Positions 1,779-12,418 of a stretch of 64,000 bases of DNA are shown here, in pieces. The translations under genes were made by a program, and so were the position numbers. The notes under the pieces are model-generated. The model searched no databases, was not told the DNA's origin, and worked only from the letters and a program-made list of their open reading frames with translations. Location of the stretch: positions 166,254-230,253 of the forward strand of contig CAJINV010000005.1 of the NCBI GenBank assembly GCA_905178155.1, read 5' to 3'. Numbering within the stretch: the stretch's first letter is position 1; every line of letters starts with the position of its first letter. The stretch is from Amoebophrya sp. A120 (taxonomy: Eukaryota; Protista; Dinoflagellata).

Positions 1779-2857
1779 CGGAAGAAGAAATTATGCAACG
1801 AGGGGACAATAGTGCGGATCTGTTATCTGCGGTTGTCAACTACAACCCGCCACAAAAATGAAGATCGCGGAGGCAAATAAGTAGTGTGGCAGCAATTTCT
1901 TCGCCATGTGGTCGTACCTATCGTCAATATTTTTGCGCAGATGATACGGACACGATGAGTTCGTTTTGCTGACCCCCACGTCCTCCGCGGCGACGGCTAA
2001 TCCGCCGTGCTTTGAAAAAAAACTTTTTATTGGAAAAGAATTTTTCAATATGCAAATCAATGAAAAGACTACGACCTTTGCAAAAAGAAAGTGAAAAACA
2101 CCACGAATTTGTGACATCACAAATGAAATGCAGATTCGTTGCGATACGAATTTGGTAACTCGAAGAACGATGCTCATCTCGACACGAGAACGACAAGGAC
2201 AACGAGTGCGATTTGCCAAATCTGCGGTTAACGAGTGCTAGCGAAACACGACAAGGCAACGGGTCGGTGTGAAGATTCATCATTCTCCGCGAGTGCAACG
2301 CGCACGCGATTCATGAAAAGCAATCCACGACTTTTTTTCAAAACAGAAACCGTGAATCGCGCGGATGAAAAGGAATCTGTCGCAAAACAAAGAAAATCGA
2401 GATTACGGAACGCAAAAAGTTCATCTTTGCGTGAAGGCCACAAAAGGTAGACGACACGCGTCCCTTGCTTTTCGAAGTTGAAAACGTTCTTTGAAGTTTT
2501 TCTAACGTATTTGAGAGGTAAGGGAAGAACTGTGGTTAATTTTTTATTTAACACGGTTGAAACAATTGCACCGTGCCCACGGCGTGTGGGAGTCCTCGTT
2601 TGGACTTTTTTCTGAGAGAACTGAGAGCCGGGAATTTTTTGAAACTCCATCACAAAGCATGATGGTTGTCCAACTCCGCGTTCTCTCTTGGTCGTCTCCG
2701 TGTTGAAGTCCCTTCGGCACCAGTTTATTGCTGTCATCGGGTTTGCAGCATCCACCCGAACCCGCATCACCCACTGGCTTTGGACAGCTTCCGAGTGCAG
2801 CCATCTTCTTGGGATCCAGCCAGCAGCGCGACAAAAGGAAACAACCAGTGACCCAGA

Positions 2858-2906
2858 GCAGGCCGACATAGTCTGGGTAACCACAAGAAGGAAGCCCGGG
2901 GTCTGT
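2858..2906 (+). ncRNA. Bulged RNA hairpin, copy 1 (bulge GACAUAGU)
   Basis: gcaggcc(2858-64) pairs with ggtctgt(2900-06); bulge 2865-72; ctgggt pairs with gcccgg; an outer stem accagtg/tactggt is also present. Confidence 0.6.
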
Positions 2907-3162
2907 TACTGGTGATTTTGCTTTTTGCAGTTGTCGCGAGCGATCTGCTGCGTGGGAGGGTCGCCAGTTCTGGAAAGTGATACGACGGTGACACGACCAC
3001 CGTGCCACCGGAGGATAACTCGCTGCTCTAGCCCTCCGGCCGGGCCCTGGAAGTAGAGACTACCTGCTGCTGCCGACGAACGGCGTTTGCCGTCCCCCCC
3101 ACTGGCCGGAAGACGCTAAAAGACAATAAGGAACCGGCGTCCCGCGTAGCAAGTGAACCGAA

Positions 3163-3211
3163 CCCGACCGTCATAGTCCAGGGGTCCCCGACAAAGGCTC
3201 CTGGGGTCGGG
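3163..3211 (+). ncRNA. Bulged RNA hairpin, copy 2 (bulge GUCAUAGU)
   Basis: cccgacc pairs with ggtcggg; bulge 3170-77; ccagggg pairs with ctcctgg; loop contains CCCCGACAAAGG. It caps a longer nested stem spanning 3121-3254. Confidence 0.7.
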
Positions 3212-3618
3212 ATTCGGCGATTTAAGACTACGCAAGCCCGGTCCTTGTTCGTCTCCAGCCAGGAGCGGACAGTGGATTTATCCTCTTACAAAGAGGATTT
3301 TTACTAGCCCGGAACCGCGTGCCGTCGTGTCTGAAGACGAACAACCGTCCCGGAGGAGCGGAATCCGTGCAGGGCCAGCTCGTAGCTTAACCCTCTAGAT
3401 CCTGCAGTACTATCGTGCTGAACTGCCGGGCACCTGCGTCGCCACCGTGCCCCACATTTCCACCGGAGGCCCAAACCGGTGGCGAAGACGACACTTACCG
3501 TTCCCTCCGCTGTCCAGAAGACAATAAAACACAGCAACAGTTCCGAGGAAGGAGCAGCAGCGAAACGAAGAGGCGTGACCACCCGACGCACATCCACCCT
3601 TGCCGTCCTCCTGCCATA

Positions 3619-3667
3619 GCTGGTCGTCATAGTCCGTGCGGCCCCGACAAGGACGCTCGGGATCAGC
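3619..3667 (+). ncRNA. Bulged RNA hairpin, copy 3 (bulge GUCAUAGU)
   Basis: gctggtc pairs with gatcagc; bulge 3626-33; ccgtgcg pairs with cgctcgg (one mismatch); loop contains CCCCGACAAGG. Confidence 0.7.
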
Positions 3668-3935
3668 GGGCTGGAGTACGCGCTACTGTCTTGAAGATCG
3701 AGGTGGTGAGCCGTAGTCGTGTGTGCTCACACTTTCTAGTCTCGTGCAGAACCCCCAAACAAAAAGATCCCAAAAAAGTAAAAGACGGCATCAGGGACAG
3801 TATACAGCTAGCCGCAAAAACAAAAGACCTCAAAAAAGTAAAAGAGTGGCAAGAGGCAACACAGAAATAGCCACCGGGGGTTCTGCTTTCCTCCGTTTTT
3901 CCTTTGCCAATATTGTCGCTGCGTCTCGCGATGAT

Positions 3936-4628
3936 ATGCTGCGCCGCCGGAGCCCGACAGCGATAGAGGAGCTCCTGCGGACAGGTGTGATCACAGAACG
4001 CGAGGCGAAGGAATACCGCGAGAACACGGAGGAAACGAAGCAGCACCTAACCAGCCTGCACCACCTCCCGCTCCTCATCCCCTTCACAAGCAACTATACC
4101 GCGTTGATAAAGGTCGAACGCGACCACGACAACCTAGCGCAGGAAACAGAGGAGAGACGCGGGTGGCTCCGGTCCAAGGAGACATCACAGCAGCACTTCG
4201 CAGCGTCCCGAGGGGATTTCGCGCTCTTTGTCTACGAGTACTGCCCCTGCAACCTCATCGTGGAACTGACGAGGAACAGAGCGCCCGCTCAGGCCCTTGC
4301 CACGACAGAGTCACTACCGCTGACAGTGCGCGACCTCTTGTGCTCCACCCAGCACGACAGTAGCGCGTTTCTGCAGGTTGAGCGGGTTGCCTACGGCCAG
4401 TACAGCCTGGGCATCGTATACGACCCTTTCGGCGGCGACCCGGGCATTACGCTGCTCATCGAAAGGATCGAGGAGAAGGTCGCTCGGGACCTCGCTGAGA
4501 GGACACGAGCGGCGGAGGACCACAACGCGACGCTACTTCAGGAGCTCCACGCCTTGCGAAGGCTGAAGAGGGTGGGGGACACCGGGGGGACGCCGGACGT
4601 CGGGACTCCTGCAGGGGACGGCGAGTAA
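3936..4628 (+). CDS. Putative ORF1 of the LINE (230 aa, C-terminal coiled coil, no recognisable family)
   Basis: First ATG in ORF 3723..4628 is at 3936. Composition is GC-rich like ORF2, on the same strand, ending ~280 nt before ORF2. LLIERIEEKVARDLAERTRAAEDHNATLLQELHALRRLK looks like a coiled coil. Confidence 0.6.
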   Translation: MLRRRSPTAIEELLRTGVITEREAKEYRENTEETKQHLTSLHHLPLLIPFTSNYTALIKVERDHDNLAQETEERRGWLRSKETSQQHFAASRGDFALFVYEYCPCNLIVELTRNRAPAQALATTESLPLTVRDLLCSTQHDSSAFLQVERVAYGQYSLGIVYDPFGGDPGITLLIERIEEKVARDLAERTRAAEDHNATLLQELHALRRLKRVGDTGGTPDVGTPAGDGE

Positions 4629-4911
4629 AGTAGAGCTGTCGCGCACCCCGCAGAGCCGTTTCGCCCCGCCGCGAATTTAGTGTCCCAATCCCGCCGGGCT
4701 AAAACTGCGCTTTCGGAGAAACGGGGACCCGAGATTCCCAGAAACCGCGGCTACAGCTCGGCGGGTTAAGGACTTCTTTTCTCCAAAATCCAAACAACGA
4801 CGTGAATCGCTACTCGGAAGCGGCGACTTTTCCTCCTTAGAGTAGTGCAGCGCAGAGGTCCGCCAGAACCAACCGGAACCTGCTGTGAACAAGCGGCTGC
4901 AGAAACGCGGC

Positions 4912-7900
4912 ATGTTCGGCACGGGAGGCAATCCGGAAGGCCAGTTCCGGTACCAGCAGTGGCCAACAGGCCCACAACAGCGGACCAACAACGTCGTGCA
5001 GCAAAACCCCCCGCAGCAAGGATGGGCGCAGCAAAATACACTACAGCAAACAAACCATGTGCAGCCACAGAGCGTCCAACCTCCCGCGCCAAACTATGGG
5101 GGGCCGGCTTTGGGGCAGGGAGCCACTCCTCTTCCGACAGTAAACGACTACCTCGTATTACACTCGATGCAGGGAGCCGCAGGTGGAGGGCCGACAGGAT
5201 ACCAGACCGCATTCCCAGTCGGGCAGCAGGGCGGCCTCCCGCGATCGGGTGATAGTCTCGGGGCACAGTCAGGTAACTTCTCCGCGCCTGCGTTTGGCAG
5301 TGCCTTCAACCGGCAGCAAGGTGGCGGTGCACATACGATGCTGCCGCCGGCACAGCCGGCGCCAACGCAGCAGACGTCTTTTAGTTTCCAAGACGTGCAG
5401 AGACTACTCGCAGCACAACAGCAACAGCTGCAGCTCCAGCCGGCCGGAGCACAGACCGGGCAAGCGGTGACGCCGGCCACACAGGGTGTGAACCCAGCGG
5501 GAGATGCGACAGGACTCCTGGGGGCCATGACGCAGCACCACCAAGACGTGCGGCATCTGCTGGGGCAGCTGCAAGGGCGAGAGATCGCCGTTCCACTGAT
5601 AACGAGGAACGCTCTTACCGGAGAGCAGACCGGCACGGAGCAGCTCGTAGCTTTGTCAGAGGAGATGCGGGAGGTCCGCAAGGTACTGGAGTCCATGGCG
5701 CACAGCCAAAACGCGGCGGCCCACCAGCAACCCCCGAAGCCCGTCACGGAGGCAGAAGCCAGTGGTAGTACTGGTAAACAACAGCAGCAACTGCTGCAGC
5801 AACTGCAGCAGCAACTGCAAATGCAACAGCAACAGCAACTGCAGCAGCAACAGCAGACGCACCAGCAGCAGCAAACGCACCAGCAACAGCAACTGCAGCA
5901 GCAACAGCAGCAGCCTCATCACCAACACTCCGACCAGATTATCAGCACCCCGACAGCAACACCACCAACCCAAAGCACCTACAACGCGATCCCGCCGGGC
6001 GGTGGCATTGTCATCCCGCAAAGACCCCTCCCTGTTGGCGCCCCGGCAGAAGCGGCCCTGCCCAGGACAGGCGAGGTACGGGCGGGCACACAGCAGTCGC
6101 GAGCGACAGAACGCGGAGCTCGCGAGGAGGCCGCCTACACACGACCGGGGGCGCAAGGACCTGCGCCAAACGCCGGCGGCACCGGTACGATAGGGGTACA
6201 TCAGCAGGGTGCGTGCTACCCCCACCAGGAAATGGACCTCGTGACGGTCCTGACCCTCATCCTGGAAGAGCAGTTCCGCCGGGTCTTCCGGGCCCTACAG
6301 AACCACGGCCTGCTGGCGCTTGTCGTTGTCGCCGTCGGAATAGCGGTGCAAATAAACTCGCACTACATGGCCAACCCGGGAGCTTCGATGATGATTGGGG
6401 GACACGCGGGGGCGGAGCTGGAGGAAGAGACGGTCGTCTCGGGCCAGATCCCGGGGCACCTTTACCTCGACCGGGAGGGAGAATACGGAAGCCCAGCGCT
6501 GCGCCGGGTCTTCCCGGACCTAAGAACGGGACCGGAGCCCAGTGCTGCTGCTTTCCACCATGGGCGGTGGCACCCAGACCCGTCGGTGCTGTCGCCGCTA
6601 GGCGCCGTCGCGATAGTAGTGTGCACGGGCACGGCGCTGGGGGTGGTATACGTCGTCGCAGACGCATGCCGGCGCGCCTGCTCGAACAGAACGCCGCCTC
6701 CAGGATGGGGCGCCGATGTAGCAGCGACTCCGATCCAACACGCGTGTCCCCAGGCCCACGCAAATACCCCCGCCTCACACCAAGAATTGGTGACGCAGCG
6801 CGACCTGCTCCCTGGACACAGCAGCCGACAAGTAGGGGGCGCAATAACACAAATCCAGCAGGCCCCCCCTGCCCTTCCTGCACATGATGAAACAGCAGCG
6901 GCGAATCATCAGGATGGCAACACAGCAGCGGCGAGGGAGCCTGCTCTCCCGCGGGTCCGGCAGGAGCAGGAGGTCCAGCCAGAACAGACTCCTCCTGGCC
7001 TGGGGCGTGCTGCCGGGACGCAGGCCGCAAGCGGACCTGCGCAGGGGGAAGCCCTGCAACACATCTCCAACTCCGGAACAAGAGCAATGCTTGCAGCGGC
7101 GCACCCGACAGCAGAGCAACAGAGGCTCCTACGGCAGCCGCCCGGGCTGGAAGGCAGCGACGCCAGTGGCGTTGCAGCCCCTGTACTACAAGCGGAGCAA
7201 CTAAATCGCGTGCAAGGGGGTGGGAGTAGTAGCAGTAACACAGGGCGCGCCAGTGTTGGCCTTGACGGGGACGAAGACCCGGAAGAAGCTGCGCGTGCGG
7301 TCGAAGGCGTTGTGTCGGTCCAGGACCTCCCACACTACCAGAACACCGAGTTCTGCGTTGTAGTCGGCCTGGGGGACACGCTAAAACAAGCAGCAGCAAC
7401 ACGGCGCTACTACTGCTCGCACTGCACGTACAGCCGCGGGTACGCGGGTAGGGTCCAGGGCTTCAGCGAGCACATCGCAAAGGCGCACAAGAAGTGCACC
7501 ACCTTCCTCTTACCCGAGTGTAGCCGGGGGAAGGAGGTCAAGTACTACACCCGCCACGTGGTCGGGCCGGCCAAGGGCGCAGCGAAAAGCGAGGAAGAGC
7601 AGTACGGTGTCAAGCACCCAGTCGTGCAAGGGGCTGTGCGGGTCGCGCAGTGGAACTGCCAGTCGCTCAACCAAAGCGACGAAGCGGCGGCTTCTGTGAA
7701 GGGGGCGGCGCTGCGCCAGCTGCTTGAGGAGCACGAGGTGGACTTGTGCCACCTCCAGGAAACCTGGCGCGGTGAAGAGTTCCTCCGCGAGTTTCTCCAG
7801 CGCCACGTCCCGGGCTGGGAGGTGCTTGAAGTCTGTGAGTCCGAAGGCAGCGGGGGAGGGGCTGCCAGCATCGTACGAGAGGGGCGAGTAGGTGTCGTGA

Positions 7901-10900
7901 AGTCAGACCCGGACTTCCGCATTGTCGCGGAGGGCGGGAAGAACGTTGCCTCCACCTGCGCCACCCTGTTCAACCTCGACACGGGCAAGGAGTGGGGCGT
8001 AAGCGCGAACGTCTACACTCCTCCGGGAATCCCCGCCCTACCGGCAATCAACATGCCGCCGGGGAAGGAGATTGCAATTTCCTGGGACGCGAACCACACA
8101 CAGGAGCCGCGGGCGACCCAGGTGAAGACCTGGGCAACTGCGCAGGCGCTGGAGTTCTACACCACCCCGCTGCCGACCCGGCCTGCGTCGAAGACCTCGC
8201 CGGACGTAGTGTTGCTGACCGGAGGACTACTCGCCCGGGCTGCCGAACTACAGCCGCAGGGGCCAGCAGTGTGCCTCGTCGGCGGCGACCATGCGGCCCT
8301 GGTCTTCGACTTGGTGGAGCCACGTGCCGATCAGCGTCCGGGGAAGCAGAACTTCACCGCCAGCAACACAGCAAAAGACGACGCCGGGGGAGGAGGGGCG
8401 GGACGAGGCCGCGCTACTGGCTCGGGGCAGAAGGCTGACCAAGGCCTCCGGGGCACACAGGACGCCGGTTCCGAAACACAGGGAGCAGGAGGAGGGGGTG
8501 GGAAAGTAAATCTCACCGGGAGGCAAAAGAAGGTTCTTCGCAAGGAGAAGTTCGAGCGCCTTCGGGCCCAGCGCGCGAACAAGCACAGCGCGGACGCGCA
8601 GAGTAGCACAGGGGAGAAACGACTGCCGGTCTTGCCGGGGCTGGGTTTGCTAGTTGCCGCAGTCTCCGGGCTGGCACCGGTAGTCCCCTCATTTGGCGGC
8701 CCCACACCGGTCCCGACACCAAGCACAGAAACGCCATCTGCGCCGGCCCCCGGGGCGGTCGCGACCCTCCCGACGGACCCCACGGCAGCTCCGTGGAGCC
8801 CGGACTTCTGGCAGGAACCACTCCCCACAACGACGAGGCGCACGCGACTGAACTTCAACCGGGCGGACTGGGACTTGTACCGCGCAGACATGCGCACCTT
8901 CCTCCGGGACCACCCGGCACCACTGTCGGTCGAGGCCAAGTTCGCACACATCCGCGCTGCGATACAAGCCGCCGCGCACAGGTCCATCCCGCGCAGCAAT
9001 GTCACGAGAAAGAGACACAGGCAGCCGCGGTGGCAAACAGGCACGGAGCTAGACCTCGCACTGAAAGAGCGGGGAGAGTGCATGAAGCGCGTGGCCTTCG
9101 CACCGCCGGCGGAGCGACTGTTCTGGCGCACCGCGTTACGGCGCGCGACGGCGCGTGTAGCAAGCGCCGAGGCCAGCAGGAGGGACGACGAGTTCGGGCA
9201 AAAGCTCGAGCAAGCGGAGCAGACAACCAGTGGGGCCTTCCGGCTTTTGCGGGAACTAGAAGGGCGGCCGCCGCCGAAGCAGCAGACCACCGCGCTGCGA
9301 TACGCGGGGAAGCTGGTGTTCAAAAAGCTCGCATGTGTCTTGGCGCATTTCTATGGGTCCCACCCGGTGCTGGACCCCGGGGCCGAACGAGTGGCCTGGG
9401 ACCAATACCAGCACACACTAGCGGAAGAGCTAGCGCCGAGCACAGCGTTGAGCTTGGAGCTGGACGACGTGGAGTTCGCTTTGCGGGGACAGAAGCCGGG
9501 CGGGGCTCCCGGGCCAGACAGCATCCACGGGGTGCTGCTGAAAAACCTCCCGCAACAGGGCAAGCAGCTCTTGCGCGCAACCTTCGAGCAAGGGGTCACC
9601 GAAGGCGTGACGCCGGAGGTAATGCGGCTAGAAGTCTGTGTACCAGTACCAAAGCCCGGCCGTGCCGCGGACCTTCCCAAATCCCTCCGGCCGGTGGCCT
9701 TGACGTCGTGCTTGGGGAAAGTCTGGGAACGCACAGTACTGCGGCGCCTGCGGCTAACCTTCCAGGCGGAGGGGGCCCCGTTGTACAGCAAGAACCAGTA
9801 CGGGGACACACCCGCAAGAAGCGCGACGGACCACACGGCAACGCTGGGGGCCCTGGCCTCCGACACCCTGCGCAAGAACCGCCGCAGGGCGACGTGCTTC
9901 TTGGACCTGAGCTCGGCCTTTGAGCGCGTGTGCCCGCCGCTGTTCCTCAACGGACTACTGGAGCGGCGGCACGAGTTTAAAAACCCGGCACGAAAACAGG
10001 AGTTCCTGCTGCTCACGCGGTGGATCTGCTCCTTCGTCACCAACCGACGCCGGGTGGTGAGGTTCAACAACGAGACCTCCCAGGCCGTCCCGCTGCGCCA
10101 GGGGGTCCCGCAGGGCACGTGCCTCGGGCCGCTGGTCTGGTGCAGTTTCGCCGACGTACTGCTCCGAGAGCTGCAGAAGAAGTGCCCGAGGGTGCAAGTC
10201 CTCGCGTACGTGGACGACTTGGCGCTCACACTGGAGTACGGCCCCGGGGAAACAGGGGAAGCACAGAAACTCCTCCAGGCTGCCCTGGACGTGGTCGCCG
10301 ACTTCTGCAGCCGGAGCAATATGGAGCTTTCCCCCGGGAAGTGTTCGTATATCGTCTTCCAGAACGAGTTTGCATGCGACTTGGATGCGCTCGCCCTGCA
10401 CCACGACGGGGAGAGGCTCGTCTACGACCCCTACCCACGCTTTCTCGGTGTGTGGTTTGATCGCAAGTTGACATTCTGTCGGCACTTTGCAGTCATATCC
10501 GAAACCCTGACCAAGAGGATGGCGGCGGTGCGCATCCTCTCGCGTGCGTTGGGCGCCGGGTCGAAGTCCGTCCGGGCTTTTTACCAGTTATTCTGCGAAA
10601 GCGTCCTCACGTATGGGCTAACAACATACTGGAACGGGCTCGGGGCGAAGGAAGCGGCCGCCCTGAACAGTTTCCAGCTGGAGGGGGCCAAAGAAGTGCT
10701 GGGCTTTCCGAAGTTCAGACAGGTGAACCGCGCCTGCGCACTTATGACGGCCGGCCTGTTGTCGCTCCCAGAGCTCTACCAAGTGGAAAGCACGGCGCTC
10801 ACGGCCCGCGCTTTCTCACGCCCGCCCGGGGACGCGCTGCGGGAGGTCGCGAACACCTCGAGCGTAGACTGGCTAGAAACCGGCTTGCAAGTGATCGACG

Positions 10901-11958
10901 AATCAAACGTCGCGGCCTCGTCCGTTCTCCCCGAGATCGGCGCGAAGGCAGGGCGGGGGTGGTCCGTCCTCCACGAGGCTGAGGAGCAGGGCCGCTTCGA
11001 GGCGACGTGGAGAAACGAAGGCACGCCGGCGCTGGTAGACACCCTCCGGGAGTCCAGCCTGGTGCTGTATTGTGACGGGTCGGTCAAAGACTTTGCCGGG
11101 TCTTGTGGCGTCTTTCTGCATGGGTTCGGCATCCAGTGTGGGGCGGCGTGGCCCATCGGGCTCCACACGGATTCGTACGAAACCGAACGCATGGCGCTCA
11201 TCGCAGCCTTCCGAGCGGTGGCACGCCACGCGCTGAAAAGCGAGCAGGTGACGATCTGCACGGACAGCCAGTCCAACGTGCGGGCGTTGCTCAATCCGAG
11301 ACTGCGGGACGACCTGGACACCGAGGTCTACACGGCTGCAGCGGACGCGCTGCAAAGCTGTGCCAAGCTGGTCGTCCGATATGTGCCAGGGCACGCCGGC
11401 ATCGCGGGGAACGTGGTCGCCGACCACCTCGCGGGGTACGCCAACCGCAGCGACCTGCAGGAAGAGGGCGAGCCGATCACGCACAAGCAGTTCAAAACGG
11501 AGGCCCGCCGCTACGTGCGGAACGAAGCCCGCCGGAACCTGGCCGAACGGCAACGGGACGAAAAGACAAAGAGCAAAACAGCGCAAACGCTCCAGGAAAC
11601 AGGGGGCTGGGGGCGTGATCTGGTGACCGACGCCGGCGGCCGCGTTGGCCAGACCATGTATTACGCCCTGCGCTTTGGGTTGTTGGCGGCGCAACCGAGT
11701 GGGGAAGACCTCGACTGTGCTCTATGTGGACAGGGGAAGGCGACGACGGCGCACTTCGTGCACGAGTGTCCGATCACGCAGCCCTTCTTCCGCTCCTGGG
11801 ACCTCGGGCACATGGAAGAGTGCCGCGACAAACCGAACCAAGTCGCGAGGGCCCTGGCGGAAGCCAATGCAACCCTTGCACCACTCACCGGCCCCTTCCC
11901 AGCAATCCGGCACCAGTGGTGGTCTGACGCACGCGGCCGCAACGCGGTTGATGAGTGA
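4912..11958 (+). CDS. LINE ORF2 polyprotein: Q-rich N-terminus, C2H2 finger, AP endonuclease, reverse transcriptase, RNase H, CCHC finger
   Basis: APE motifs QWNCQSL, LQETW, NVYTPP, WDAN, SPD, GDH (~7636-8315). RT motifs APGPDSI, PVPKPG, LRPVALTS, FLDLSSAF, GVPQG, YVDD (10207-18), FLGV. RNase H motifs YCDGS, TDSQS, VPGHAGIAGN..AD. C-terminal CALC...HFVHEC and N-terminal CSHC...HIAKAH. First ATG at 4912. Confidence 0.95.
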   Translation: MFGTGGNPEGQFRYQQWPTGPQQRTNNVVQQNPPQQGWAQQNTLQQTNHVQPQSVQPPAPNYGGPALGQGATPLPTVNDYLVLHSMQGAAGGGPTGYQTAFPVGQQGGLPRSGDSLGAQSGNFSAPAFGSAFNRQQGGGAHTMLPPAQPAPTQQTSFSFQDVQRLLAAQQQQLQLQPAGAQTGQAVTPATQGVNPAGDATGLLGAMTQHHQDVRHLLGQLQGREIAVPLITRNALTGEQTGTEQLVALSEEMREVRKVLESMAHSQNAAAHQQPPKPVTEAEASGSTGKQQQQLLQQLQQQLQMQQQQQLQQQQQTHQQQQTHQQQQLQQQQQQPHHQHSDQIISTPTATPPTQSTYNAIPPGGGIVIPQRPLPVGAPAEAALPRTGEVRAGTQQSRATERGAREEAAYTRPGAQGPAPNAGGTGTIGVHQQGACYPHQEMDLVTVLTLILEEQFRRVFRALQNHGLLALVVVAVGIAVQINSHYMANPGASMMIGGHAGAELEEETVVSGQIPGHLYLDREGEYGSPALRRVFPDLRTGPEPSAAAFHHGRWHPDPSVLSPLGAVAIVVCTGTALGVVYVVADACRRACSNRTPPPGWGADVAATPIQHACPQAHANTPASHQELVTQRDLLPGHSSRQVGGAITQIQQAPPALPAHDETAAANHQDGNTAAAREPALPRVRQEQEVQPEQTPPGLGRAAGTQAASGPAQGEALQHISNSGTRAMLAAAHPTAEQQRLLRQPPGLEGSDASGVAAPVLQAEQLNRVQGGGSSSSNTGRASVGLDGDEDPEEAARAVEGVVSVQDLPHYQNTEFCVVVGLGDTLKQAAATRRYYCSHCTYSRGYAGRVQGFSEHIAKAHKKCTTFLLPECSRGKEVKYYTRHVVGPAKGAAKSEEEQYGVKHPVVQGAVRVAQWNCQSLNQSDEAAASVKGAALRQLLEEHEVDLCHLQETWRGEEFLREFLQRHVPGWEVLEVCESEGSGGGAASIVREGRVGVVKSDPDFRIVAEGGKNVASTCATLFNLDTGKEWGVSANVYTPPGIPALPAINMPPGKEIAISWDANHTQEPRATQVKTWATAQALEFYTTPLPTRPASKTSPDVVLLTGGLLARAAELQPQGPAVCLVGGDHAALVFDLVEPRADQRPGKQNFTASNTAKDDAGGGGAGRGRATGSGQKADQGLRGTQDAGSETQGAGGGGGKVNLTGRQKKVLRKEKFERLRAQRANKHSADAQSSTGEKRLPVLPGLGLLVAAVSGLAPVVPSFGGPTPVPTPSTETPSAPAPGAVATLPTDPTAAPWSPDFWQEPLPTTTRRTRLNFNRADWDLYRADMRTFLRDHPAPLSVEAKFAHIRAAIQAAAHRSIPRSNVTRKRHRQPRWQTGTELDLALKERGECMKRVAFAPPAERLFWRTALRRATARVASAEASRRDDEFGQKLEQAEQTTSGAFRLLRELEGRPPPKQQTTALRYAGKLVFKKLACVLAHFYGSHPVLDPGAERVAWDQYQHTLAEELAPSTALSLELDDVEFALRGQKPGGAPGPDSIHGVLLKNLPQQGKQLLRATFEQGVTEGVTPEVMRLEVCVPVPKPGRAADLPKSLRPVALTSCLGKVWERTVLRRLRLTFQAEGAPLYSKNQYGDTPARSATDHTATLGALASDTLRKNRRRATCFLDLSSAFERVCPPLFLNGLLERRHEFKNPARKQEFLLLTRWICSFVTNRRRVVRFNNETSQAVPLRQGVPQGTCLGPLVWCSFADVLLRELQKKCPRVQVLAYVDDLALTLEYGPGETGEAQKLLQAALDVVADFCSRSNMELSPGKCSYIVFQNEFACDLDALALHHDGERLVYDPYPRFLGVWFDRKLTFCRHFAVISETLTKRMAAVRILSRALGAGSKSVRAFYQLFCESVLTYGLTTYWNGLGAKEAAALNSFQLEGAKEVLGFPKFRQVNRACALMTAGLLSLPELYQVESTALTARAFSRPPGDALREVANTSSVDWLETGLQVIDESNVAASSVLPEIGAKAGRGWSVLHEAEEQGRFEATWRNEGTPALVDTLRESSLVLYCDGSVKDFAGSCGVFLHGFGIQCGAAWPIGLHTDSYETERMALIAAFRAVARHALKSEQVTICTDSQSNVRALLNPRLRDDLDTEVYTAAADALQSCAKLVVRYVPGHAGIAGNVVADHLAGYANRSDLQEEGEPITHKQFKTEARRYVRNEARRNLAERQRDEKTKSKTAQTLQETGGWGRDLVTDAGGRVGQTMYYALRFGLLAAQPSGEDLDCALCGQGKATTAHFVHECPITQPFFRSWDLGHMEECRDKPNQVARALAEANATLAPLTGPFPAIRHQWWSDARGRNAVDE
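5779..5913 (+). repeat. CAG/CAA polyglutamine tract within LINE ORF2
   Basis: Imperfect CAG/CAA repeat encoding QQQQLLQQLQQQLQMQQQ... Confidence 0.9.
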
Positions 11959-12418
11959 CGCTCTGCAAAAGACTCCAGACTAGTTGAAAAATTTTTCTCT
12001 CATAAACGCCTTCTTTTTCTCAAAGTCTCTGAACTTGACTTTACACACTTAGCAGAAAGCTTCGACTTCGCATTTAAATTTTTATAGTGATCAAAAGGTT
12101 AAAAAGCGACCAAAGTGTCGCGATCTCCCTAAGCACGGCAGGACTGGCTCAGCCTGCAGTCAGCTGTGCCTTTTTTCAGCGACAGATGGTTATGGGCAGT
12201 AGTATCTTTTTCCAACAGGCCGTTTTTAGTTTTAAAGCAGTTGCACACTAGCACTACCGGTAGCAGTCACTGAGTATTTTTTCAAGCTTCTCTGCGTAGA
12301 GGGATTTTTATTGAAATAGCGCTAAGGAAAAAAGGTGAGTAATCGCGTTTCCACCTTACCGCATTTCTACAAACAAACAAAGTTTTTCTATTTAATTTTC
12401 TTCTATGATCAATGTTTT

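Follow-up and report, generated by a model that had tools for sequence, protein, structure and literature searches.

The window considered here is a stretch of 64,000 nucleotides (nt) from the parasitic dinoflagellate Amoebophrya sp. A120 (contig CAJINV010000005.1, forward strand, positions 166,254 to 230,253). Its plus strand carries a full-length retrotransposon lacking long terminal repeats (non-LTR) at 2541-12381, which was delimited by homology to three other copies and by target-site duplications (TSDs). The element opens with a 5' untranslated region (UTR), or leader, of 1395 nt (2541-3935), found to be AUG-depleted when its ATG counts were compared with dinucleotide shuffles. The leader is followed by two open reading frames (ORFs) on the same strand: ORF1 (3936-4628), which encodes an orphan protein of 230 amino acids, and ORF2 (4885-11958), an open frame of 2357 amino acids in which the first methionine is residue 10. 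Within the leader lie three bulged hairpins. Judged from sequence comparison, they belong to a real, covariation-supported RNA structure, which is previously undescribed and whose base resembles the protein-binding core of selenocysteine insertion sequence (SECIS) elements.

The hairpins were noticed in an initial annotation of the window as three 49-nt segments at 2858-2906, 3163-3211 and 3619-3667, and all three are present there with the bulge and the stems as claimed. Their common layout comprises a 7-bp lower stem, an 8-nt bulge on the 5' side, a 6-7-bp upper stem and a loop of 13-15 nt. The bulge reads GACAUAGU at 2865-2872 and GUCAUAGU at both 3170-3177 and 3626-3633. The pattern GWCATAGT occurs four times in the 64-kb window, as compared with 1.29 expected by chance, and three of these occurrences, on the plus strand, are the hairpins themselves. 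On the plus strand, the fold of lowest energy computed by RNAfold is the bulged hairpin for copies 1 and 2 (-18.3 and -25.2 kcal/mol; z -2.3), and the reverse strands of copies 1 and 3 show no gain in stability over shuffled sequences (z +0.5 and 0.0). In copy 3, the lower stem is retained, but a U.U mismatch interrupts the upper one, where the minimum-energy fold departs from the bulged hairpin. The single fold that had been proposed for all three is, thus, the minimum-energy fold of copies 1 and 2 alone, and 49 nt is not the size of their unit. Likewise, the loop CCCCGACAA is indeed shared by copies 2 and 3; it is, however, specific to the element's own family (family A, below) and not to the motif.

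The real unit of copies 1 and 2 is about 72-112 nt long, as it includes conserved AGUGA and GAUUU flanks, an extra helix that covaries and an outer one that closes the module. Module 1 occupies 2827-2938 on the plus strand, inclusive of its closing helix, H1, whose arms are at 2827-2841 and 2924-2938, as seen from the inverted repeat I2 and the minimum-energy fold of a 152-nt stretch. Its core (2847-2918) consists of AGUGA-N, a 12-bp helix, the bulge, the upper helix, the loop and N-GAUUU, and scores 85 bits with the extended covariance model R3. Module 2, also on the plus strand, spans 3144-3233 and is closed by the outer helix GCGUAG (3144-3149)/CUACGC (3228-3233), as judged from the sequence and the minimum-energy fold; its core (3152-3223) has the same order of parts and scores 86.4 bits. 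Hairpin 3 (3619-3667, plus strand; 43.5 bits) represents a second subtype, with the bulge and stems and without AGUGA and GAUUU. The same subtype forms the third hairpin of another element family, B (L007:2047-2095 and L029:803-851). No further significant site was found with R3 in the 64-kb window.

The motif is not confined to this element. A covariance model built from the three window copies (R1) was searched against the genome of 115,520,608 bases, and it matched all three sites in each of the four copies of family A, together with two to three sites each in further loci on C5, C2, C8 and C17; one of these loci, on C2, is a fragment broken inside its third hairpin. When the window proteins were used in tblastn, homologues of ORF1 and ORF2 were found directly downstream of the motif arrays of the lineages named B, C, D and E. 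The motif is, therefore, present in at least five diverged element lineages, with two to three copies per leader. Between lineages, ORF2 is 32-57% identical (tblastn), and ORF1 shares 26-35% identity with the window ORF1 (alignment). Every strong genome-wide match whose surroundings were read sits upstream of such homologues. Outside that set, R3 also matches two sites at C4:1250328/1250544 (1250328-1250617, plus strand) and two at C16:1815802/1815991 (1815802-1816066, minus strand), with a spacing of about 190-215 nt, as well as several single sites, among them C3:10042346, C6:2041436 and C2:11224805, all on the minus strand. A leader carries two full modules about 180-305 nt apart, to which families A and B add the third, simpler bulged hairpin. 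Outside the motifs, the leaders of different lineages cannot be aligned, save for the stretch 3613-3881, which is about 71% identical to family B and is the sole segment, besides the hairpins, that can be aligned between families. A metagenome scan with the motif pattern gave seven matches, which is about the chance number estimated by hand; none of them folds like the motif, and the best R2 scores were 15 and 13 bits.

The structure itself was assessed on 17 copies aligned with MAFFT (alignment A3), without fitting to any structure. In every lineage, hairpins 1 and 2 read, from 5' to 3', AGUGA-N, a 4-bp helix, the 49-nt bulged hairpin and N-GAUUU. The 4-bp helix alone occurs as CCAG/CUGG, CCGA/UCGG, CCAC/GUGG, CCAA/UUGG, UCAC/GUGA and CCGC/GUGG. 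From A3, RNAalifold predicts a continuous 12-bp helix with one bulged base in the 3' strand, the 8-nt bulge and a 6-bp upper helix, and compensatory double changes are seen in 14 of the 18 pairs. In our own structure of 20 pairs, 90.6% of the cells are paired, as against 27-52% after a shift of the partners by 1-3 columns; 13 of these pairs show double changes, a number reached by none of 500 shuffles. The 49-nt core, examined over 19 distinct sequences, shows the same covariation behaviour. An outer helix of 5-8 bp is present at the base of most copies, closing the module, and the outer flanks are more complementary within a copy (-21.1 kcal/mol) than between copies (-16.6 kcal/mol; sd 5.8, n=12). 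The apical part of the module varies in length from 11 to 25 nt.

While the helices vary freely, two unpaired patches do not. The bulge G-W-C-A-U-A-G-U is found in 17 of 17 copies, with C-G pairs on both sides, its second base being U in ten copies, A in six and C in one. At the base of the module, the columns of A3 show G.A and A.G in all 17 copies, U.U in 15, then G.U in 17 and A-U in 15, and the A.G pair is set off from the helix by a variable 1 x 1 mismatch. Divergent stems that still pair around invariant unpaired bases were described in the initial annotation, and the covariation described above bears it out. Selection on the RNA structure is supported as well, though the evidence comes mainly from the approximately 17-19 distinct copies in other elements and not from the three window copies alone. 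A suggested pairing between GUC of the bulge and GAC of the loop, on the other hand, has to be given up: the loops outside family A lack the partner, and no covariation with the A/U position of the bulge is seen.

As for the strand, the helices contain 21 G.U against 7 A.C combinations, and one G.U adjoining the core is invariant, in agreement with the sense-strand assignment made earlier from wobble pairs. The family A leader has only 3 ATG, as against 11.8 +/- 2.8 in dinucleotide shuffles (1 of 500 as low), and CAT occurs in it 13 times. In the leaders of families A, B1 and B2, AUG but not CAU is depleted, with 1 of 500 shuffles as low in each; for family D, 12 of 500 shuffles are as low. 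These AUG-depleted leaders are those of the window (2541-3935), L041, L006 and L036. Taken together, the G.U excess and the depletion of AUG on the sense strand only point to the motif being a sense-strand RNA. The depletion is, besides, suggestive of scanning by ribosomes over 1.4-2.3 kb of structured leader.

Two further sequences in the related elements deserve mention. A mini module of 49 nt lies on the minus strand at L042:2984-3031 (C5 ~1583483-1583530), just past the end of ORF2 of a family B2 element. It consists of AGUGA-C, CCAC, a plain hairpin, GUGG and U-GAUUU, with AUAGUC directly upstream and with no bulged upper part. In view of it, the G.A core may be a reusable building block in these elements. 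Further, the 11-mer GCCATTTTGGC stands just downstream of the first module of family E (L035; C5 ~4564130). We take it to match the middle of the spliced leader of dinoflagellates, perhaps by chance or perhaps as a vestige of an ancestral RNA that had been trans-spliced.

The host element belongs to a family of four full-length copies, namely the window copy and those on C3, C8 and C4, which are 95-99% identical. The alignment of the other three with the window opens at 2537-2542 and closes at 12381, and TSDs of about 9-11 bp are seen in three of the copies. In addition, a contig from run X1 differs in the flank up to 2541 and, thus, confirms the 5' boundary. The element is 9.8 kb long, its first motif starts 306 nt inside, and the copies do not have a spliced leader at their start. 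The placement of the hairpins in a LINE (long interspersed nuclear element) leader, as first annotated, therefore holds: they lie inside the 1.4-kb 5' UTR of a full-length non-LTR element. The assignment of this element as a LINE is supported at the level of sequence by a reverse transcriptase (RT), a weak endonuclease match, TSDs, a defined tail and tail-only copies. At the 5' junction of two copies (window 2496-2540; L003, the C8 copy), about 30-36 non-homologous bases lie between the TSD and the shared terminus. Segments of the window leader recur with a period of about 440-455 bp, and two A-rich direct repeats of 34 nt (3752-3845, plus strand; repeat family D2) stand between hairpin 3 and the start of ORF1; they are 82% identical, 60 nt apart and about 90 nt upstream of the ORF1 AUG.

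The ORF1 protein (ORF1p), characterised by homologue searches and a structure model, ends in a UAA stop in family A and belongs to no Pfam family. Neither of two large protein searches, over 5.8 billion clustered proteins and 1.84 billion representatives, yielded a relative. Its AlphaFold model (predicted local distance difference test, pLDDT, of 70) comprises an alpha/beta domain and a long C-terminal helix of 44 residues, and a conserved motif, R-V-G-D-T-G-G, is present in its tail. When the model was compared with the PDB, only the C-terminal helix matched PDB chains and the alpha/beta domain remained without a match; weak rows for eIF4E, with a TM score of about 0.19, are not meaningful. 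ORF2 is an uninterrupted frame of 2357 codons with no in-frame stop. Its Pfam matches are RVT_1 (E 7.8e-24), RNase_H (E 1.5e-09) and, for the apurinic/apyrimidinic-type endonuclease, a weak Exo_endo_phos match that is below Pfam's cut-off (E 0.0015). Its best PDB sequence match is human LINE-1 ORF2p, and in other organisms the RT region finds distant LINEs only, at 30% identity or less. The first ~800 residues of ORF2 (window 4912-7400) are of low complexity, rich in Gln, Pro and Gly, and are not conserved in families C-E, where ORF2 homology begins near residue 840; the conserved part of ORF2p covers residues of about 840-1560.

At the 3' end, a comparison of element copies outlined a tail (12300-12381, plus strand) with a small hairpin, AAGGUG/CACCUU, and an (ACAA)n end. 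The last 80 nt alone have at least 30 short matches elsewhere in the genome, with 81-95% identity; these represent either many 5'-truncated copies or non-autonomous elements sharing the tail. Beyond the element, all 13 ORFs of at least 300 amino acids between 12419 and 62686 are on the minus strand, where they form a one-directional gene array, and the inserted LINE runs counter to it. Two Metallophos proteins and a HECT ligase are among those encoded.

The interpretation that we tentatively favour, and to which we give not quite an even chance, is that the module is a protein-binding platform on the full-length sense RNA and a cis-acting part of one LINE clade. Two invariant unpaired patches, placed 12 bp apart on helices that are free to vary, would offer a docking surface for a protein. 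The partner would most likely be the element's own ORF1p and/or ORF2p; alternatively, a host protein of the L7Ae type, which reads G.A quartets, could take this place. Such binding would mark the full-length sense RNA for ribonucleoprotein (RNP) assembly and retrotransposition, and the repetition of the module would add avidity. It would probably also damp the translation of ORF1, because the leader appears to be scanned, as seen from the AUG depletion. Protein docking is our best guess from the anatomy of the module, that is, the spaced patches, the variable apex, the repetition, the conservation across diverged lineages and the retention in retrotransposed RNAs. The last of these is seen from the four family A copies, in which the leader is retained with the same 5' terminus, so that the RNAs which were retrotransposed had kept their modules.

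Several points weigh against this interpretation. All the copies are paralogous and come from one genome, and the shuffle statistics, therefore, overstate their independence; firmer evidence comes from the slid controls and from how many different pair types each position shows. The G.A/A.G pairing is inferred by analogy and not from covariation, because these pairs are invariant. Three raw RNA-seq runs carrying the same species label have zero reads on the stretch and, hence, provide no test of expression. On the protein side, the AlphaFold model of ORF1p shows no recognisable RNA-binding fold when compared with the PDB, and Pfam detects no L7Ae-like domain in ORF1 or ORF2. Lastly, stable hairpins in a scanned leader could equally act as translational elements themselves.

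To our knowledge, structured cis-elements by which the proteins of a retrotransposon select the RNA of their own element have been described in very few LINEs, and in none from dinoflagellates or their parasitic relatives. Here, the helices vary and the two patches stay invariant across lineages whose ORF1 is only 26-35% identical, which is an unusually clean comparative signal. The module is, moreover, a defined small RNA of about 72 nt, suited to binding, probing and cleavage tests. If the orphan ORF1p is the partner, the module would offer access to a LINE ORF1 protein of a new kind. If an L7Ae-type protein reads the G.A core instead, it would be a new use, by a mobile element, of the SECIS and kink-turn (K-turn) mode of recognition, and it would bear on how RNAs lacking a spliced leader are handled in a trans-splicing organism.

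A role in translation control would see the hairpins recruit ribosomes or initiation factors, or allow shunting, for the translation of an RNA without a spliced-leader cap; alternatively, they would form a roadblock that tunes ORF1 synthesis. We regard this as unlikely on the whole, though a good deal speaks for it. The motif is located in the 5' UTR, and in families A, C, D and E the ORF1 AUG follows the last hairpin at a distance of about 120-270 nt; an A-rich repeat comes just before the AUG, and the copies do not begin with a spliced leader. Contact of SECIS-type cores with the ribosomal protein L30 is also described in an excerpt of PMC3706390. In family B1, however, about 730 nt separate the last hairpin from the AUG, and the AUG depletion over 1.4-2.3 kb fits scanning from the 5' end and not internal entry. 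An internal ribosome entry site (IRES) is less likely because of this depletion, and no similarity to any Rfam IRES was found. The normal mRNAs of the host organism carry a trans-spliced leader, and two further readings build on its absence here. In one of them, which we hold to be doubtful, the clade has evolved or captured a SECIS-core-like module that recruits a host L7Ae-family protein (a homologue of SBP2, L30 or Snu13) or the ribosome; this would open a private route of export, translation or RNP assembly to a spliced-leader-less RNA, with GWCAUAGU as a second, new specificity determinant that replaces the A-run of SECIS elements. In the other, the motif would be a nuclear export, stability or localisation element, comparable to the constitutive transport element of simple retroviruses and bound by an export or protective factor of the host for RNA that bypasses trans-splicing. 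The duplicated, extended helix with its two conserved patches of unpaired bases suits this, as does the need of the template RNA to stay un-trans-spliced in order to keep its leader; yet the motif does not resemble known transport elements in sequence and the reading cannot be told apart from the binding of protein in general, and we give it a slim chance.

The repetition of the units at a spacing of about 200-300 bp, along with the ~440-455-bp period of the leader segments, could also be viewed at the level of DNA. LINEs need an internal promoter, and the units might be promoter 'monomers' as in mouse L1, with AGTGA, CGWCATAGTC and GATTT as transcription-factor sites and the hairpin potential being secondary. 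Double-stranded DNA sites, however, do not explain compensatory changes in 13-14 base pairs, the bias of G.U over A.C (21:7) is strand-specific, and the first unit is 306 nt downstream of the element start; such a DNA-level role is, accordingly, quite improbable. Least probable is a new self-cleaving ribozyme that processes the element RNA. The 5' regions of several LINE groups carry ribozymes, both HDV-like (hepatitis delta virus-like) and, in human L1, twister-sister-like (PMC11620745), and the motif does present, between helices that covary, a bulge with unpaired nucleotides that are invariant, a CA step among them. Nevertheless, no Rfam ribozyme model (HDV-like, hammerhead or twister-sister-like) matches it, and its bulge has no opposing strand, unlike the loops of the twister-sister or hairpin ribozymes. 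Three cutting sites in one leader would, moreover, destroy the template. A ribozyme that defines the 5' end is unlikely in particular, as the first motif is 306 nt internal and the upstream stretch is retained in four of four full-length copies; because all that lies upstream is still present in the retrotransposed copies, no cut at the motif was made in the mobilised RNAs.

In comparison with known RNA families, lenient Rfam scans gave no match on the hairpins, either at E up to 1 over 14 kb or at E up to 10 over 921 nt, which agrees with the initial view that the motif belongs to no known family. Matches to isrG and to a microRNA at 5758-5872, within ORF2 but on the minus strand, are far below the gathering scores and were taken as chance. 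That view had also set the motif apart from the LINE ribozymes and from the epsilon RNA of hepadnaviruses, and here, too, it stands, given the absence of Rfam ribozyme matches and of an acceptor copy of the bulge. The likeness to epsilon is that of a bulged hairpin near the 5' end of a reverse-transcribed RNA, with a lower stem, a 5' bulge, an upper stem and a loop. In epsilon, the bulge templates a short primer, which is then moved to a matching acceptor near the 3' end. Within the 9.8-kb element, CATAGT is present only at 2867, 3172 and 3628, that is, in the bulges, so that an acceptor copy is lacking and priming of the epsilon type is not supported; the complement of the bulge, ACTATG, occurs once, at 5093, inside ORF2. 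LINEs, furthermore, prime on nicked target DNA, and the motif differs from epsilon in its G.A core and its several copies. The 5' structure of the R2 retrotransposon includes an HDV-like ribozyme at the exact 5' end, and that of the motif does not. The general resemblance to R2 and other LINEs is that a structured UTR is recognised by the element's protein through stem-loops, as described in an excerpt of PMC11194090; similarity in sequence or structure is not seen.

A closer likeness is to the kink-turns of the box C/D and U4 small nuclear RNA type, in which tandem sheared-type G.A/A.G pairs are followed by U.U in the non-canonical stem. The 3' strand of the motif, GUGAUUU, is similar to box C (RUGAUGA), and its 5' strand, GUGA, to box D (CUGA). 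A K-turn, however, needs an asymmetric 3-nt bulge on one strand, immediately 5' of the tandem G.A/A.G pairs and flanked by a Watson-Crick helix, where the motif leaves a 1 x 1 mismatch. The register of a box C/D K-turn was also tried on the motif; it does not pair, and the covarying helix (pairs 10-82 to 13-79) is incompatible with it.

The type II SECIS element of eukaryotes, to which the L7Ae-family proteins SBP2 and L30 bind, shares the whole succession of an outer helix, an internal loop, a non-Watson-Crick quartet, helix 2, a patch in the 5' strand, helix 3 and an apical loop. The SECIS quartet is UGAN/KGAW and its helix 2 has 11-16 bp (PMC2647825). The motif has 5' UGAN and 3' NGAU, with the 3' N being U in 12 of 17 copies, in accordance with this quartet, and its helix 2 of 12 bp, with one bulged base in the 3' strand, is within the published range. 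A purine precedes the UGA in both, although it is G in all copies of the motif and usually A in SECIS. The second patch, GWCAUAGU, has no AA in place of the SECIS A-run (AAR). SECIS elements, besides, stand in the 3' UTR of mRNAs in which an in-frame UGA is read as selenocysteine, whereas the motif lies in a 5' UTR in two to three copies. As the A-run is missing, the position is in the 5' UTR, ORF1 ends in UAA, ORF2 has no in-frame stop and none of the SECIS models of Rfam matches even at E up to 10, the motif is not a SECIS. The G.A quartet of SECIS is described, in an excerpt of PMC1874613, as the site for L7Ae-family proteins. By analogy, the motif would work like such a G.A-quartet protein-binding site, as a member of neither the SECIS nor the K-turn family; its AGUGA...GAUUU core, which lies beyond the 49-nt unit first recognised, finds its closest known analogue in the G.A quartet of the SECIS and K-turn kind.

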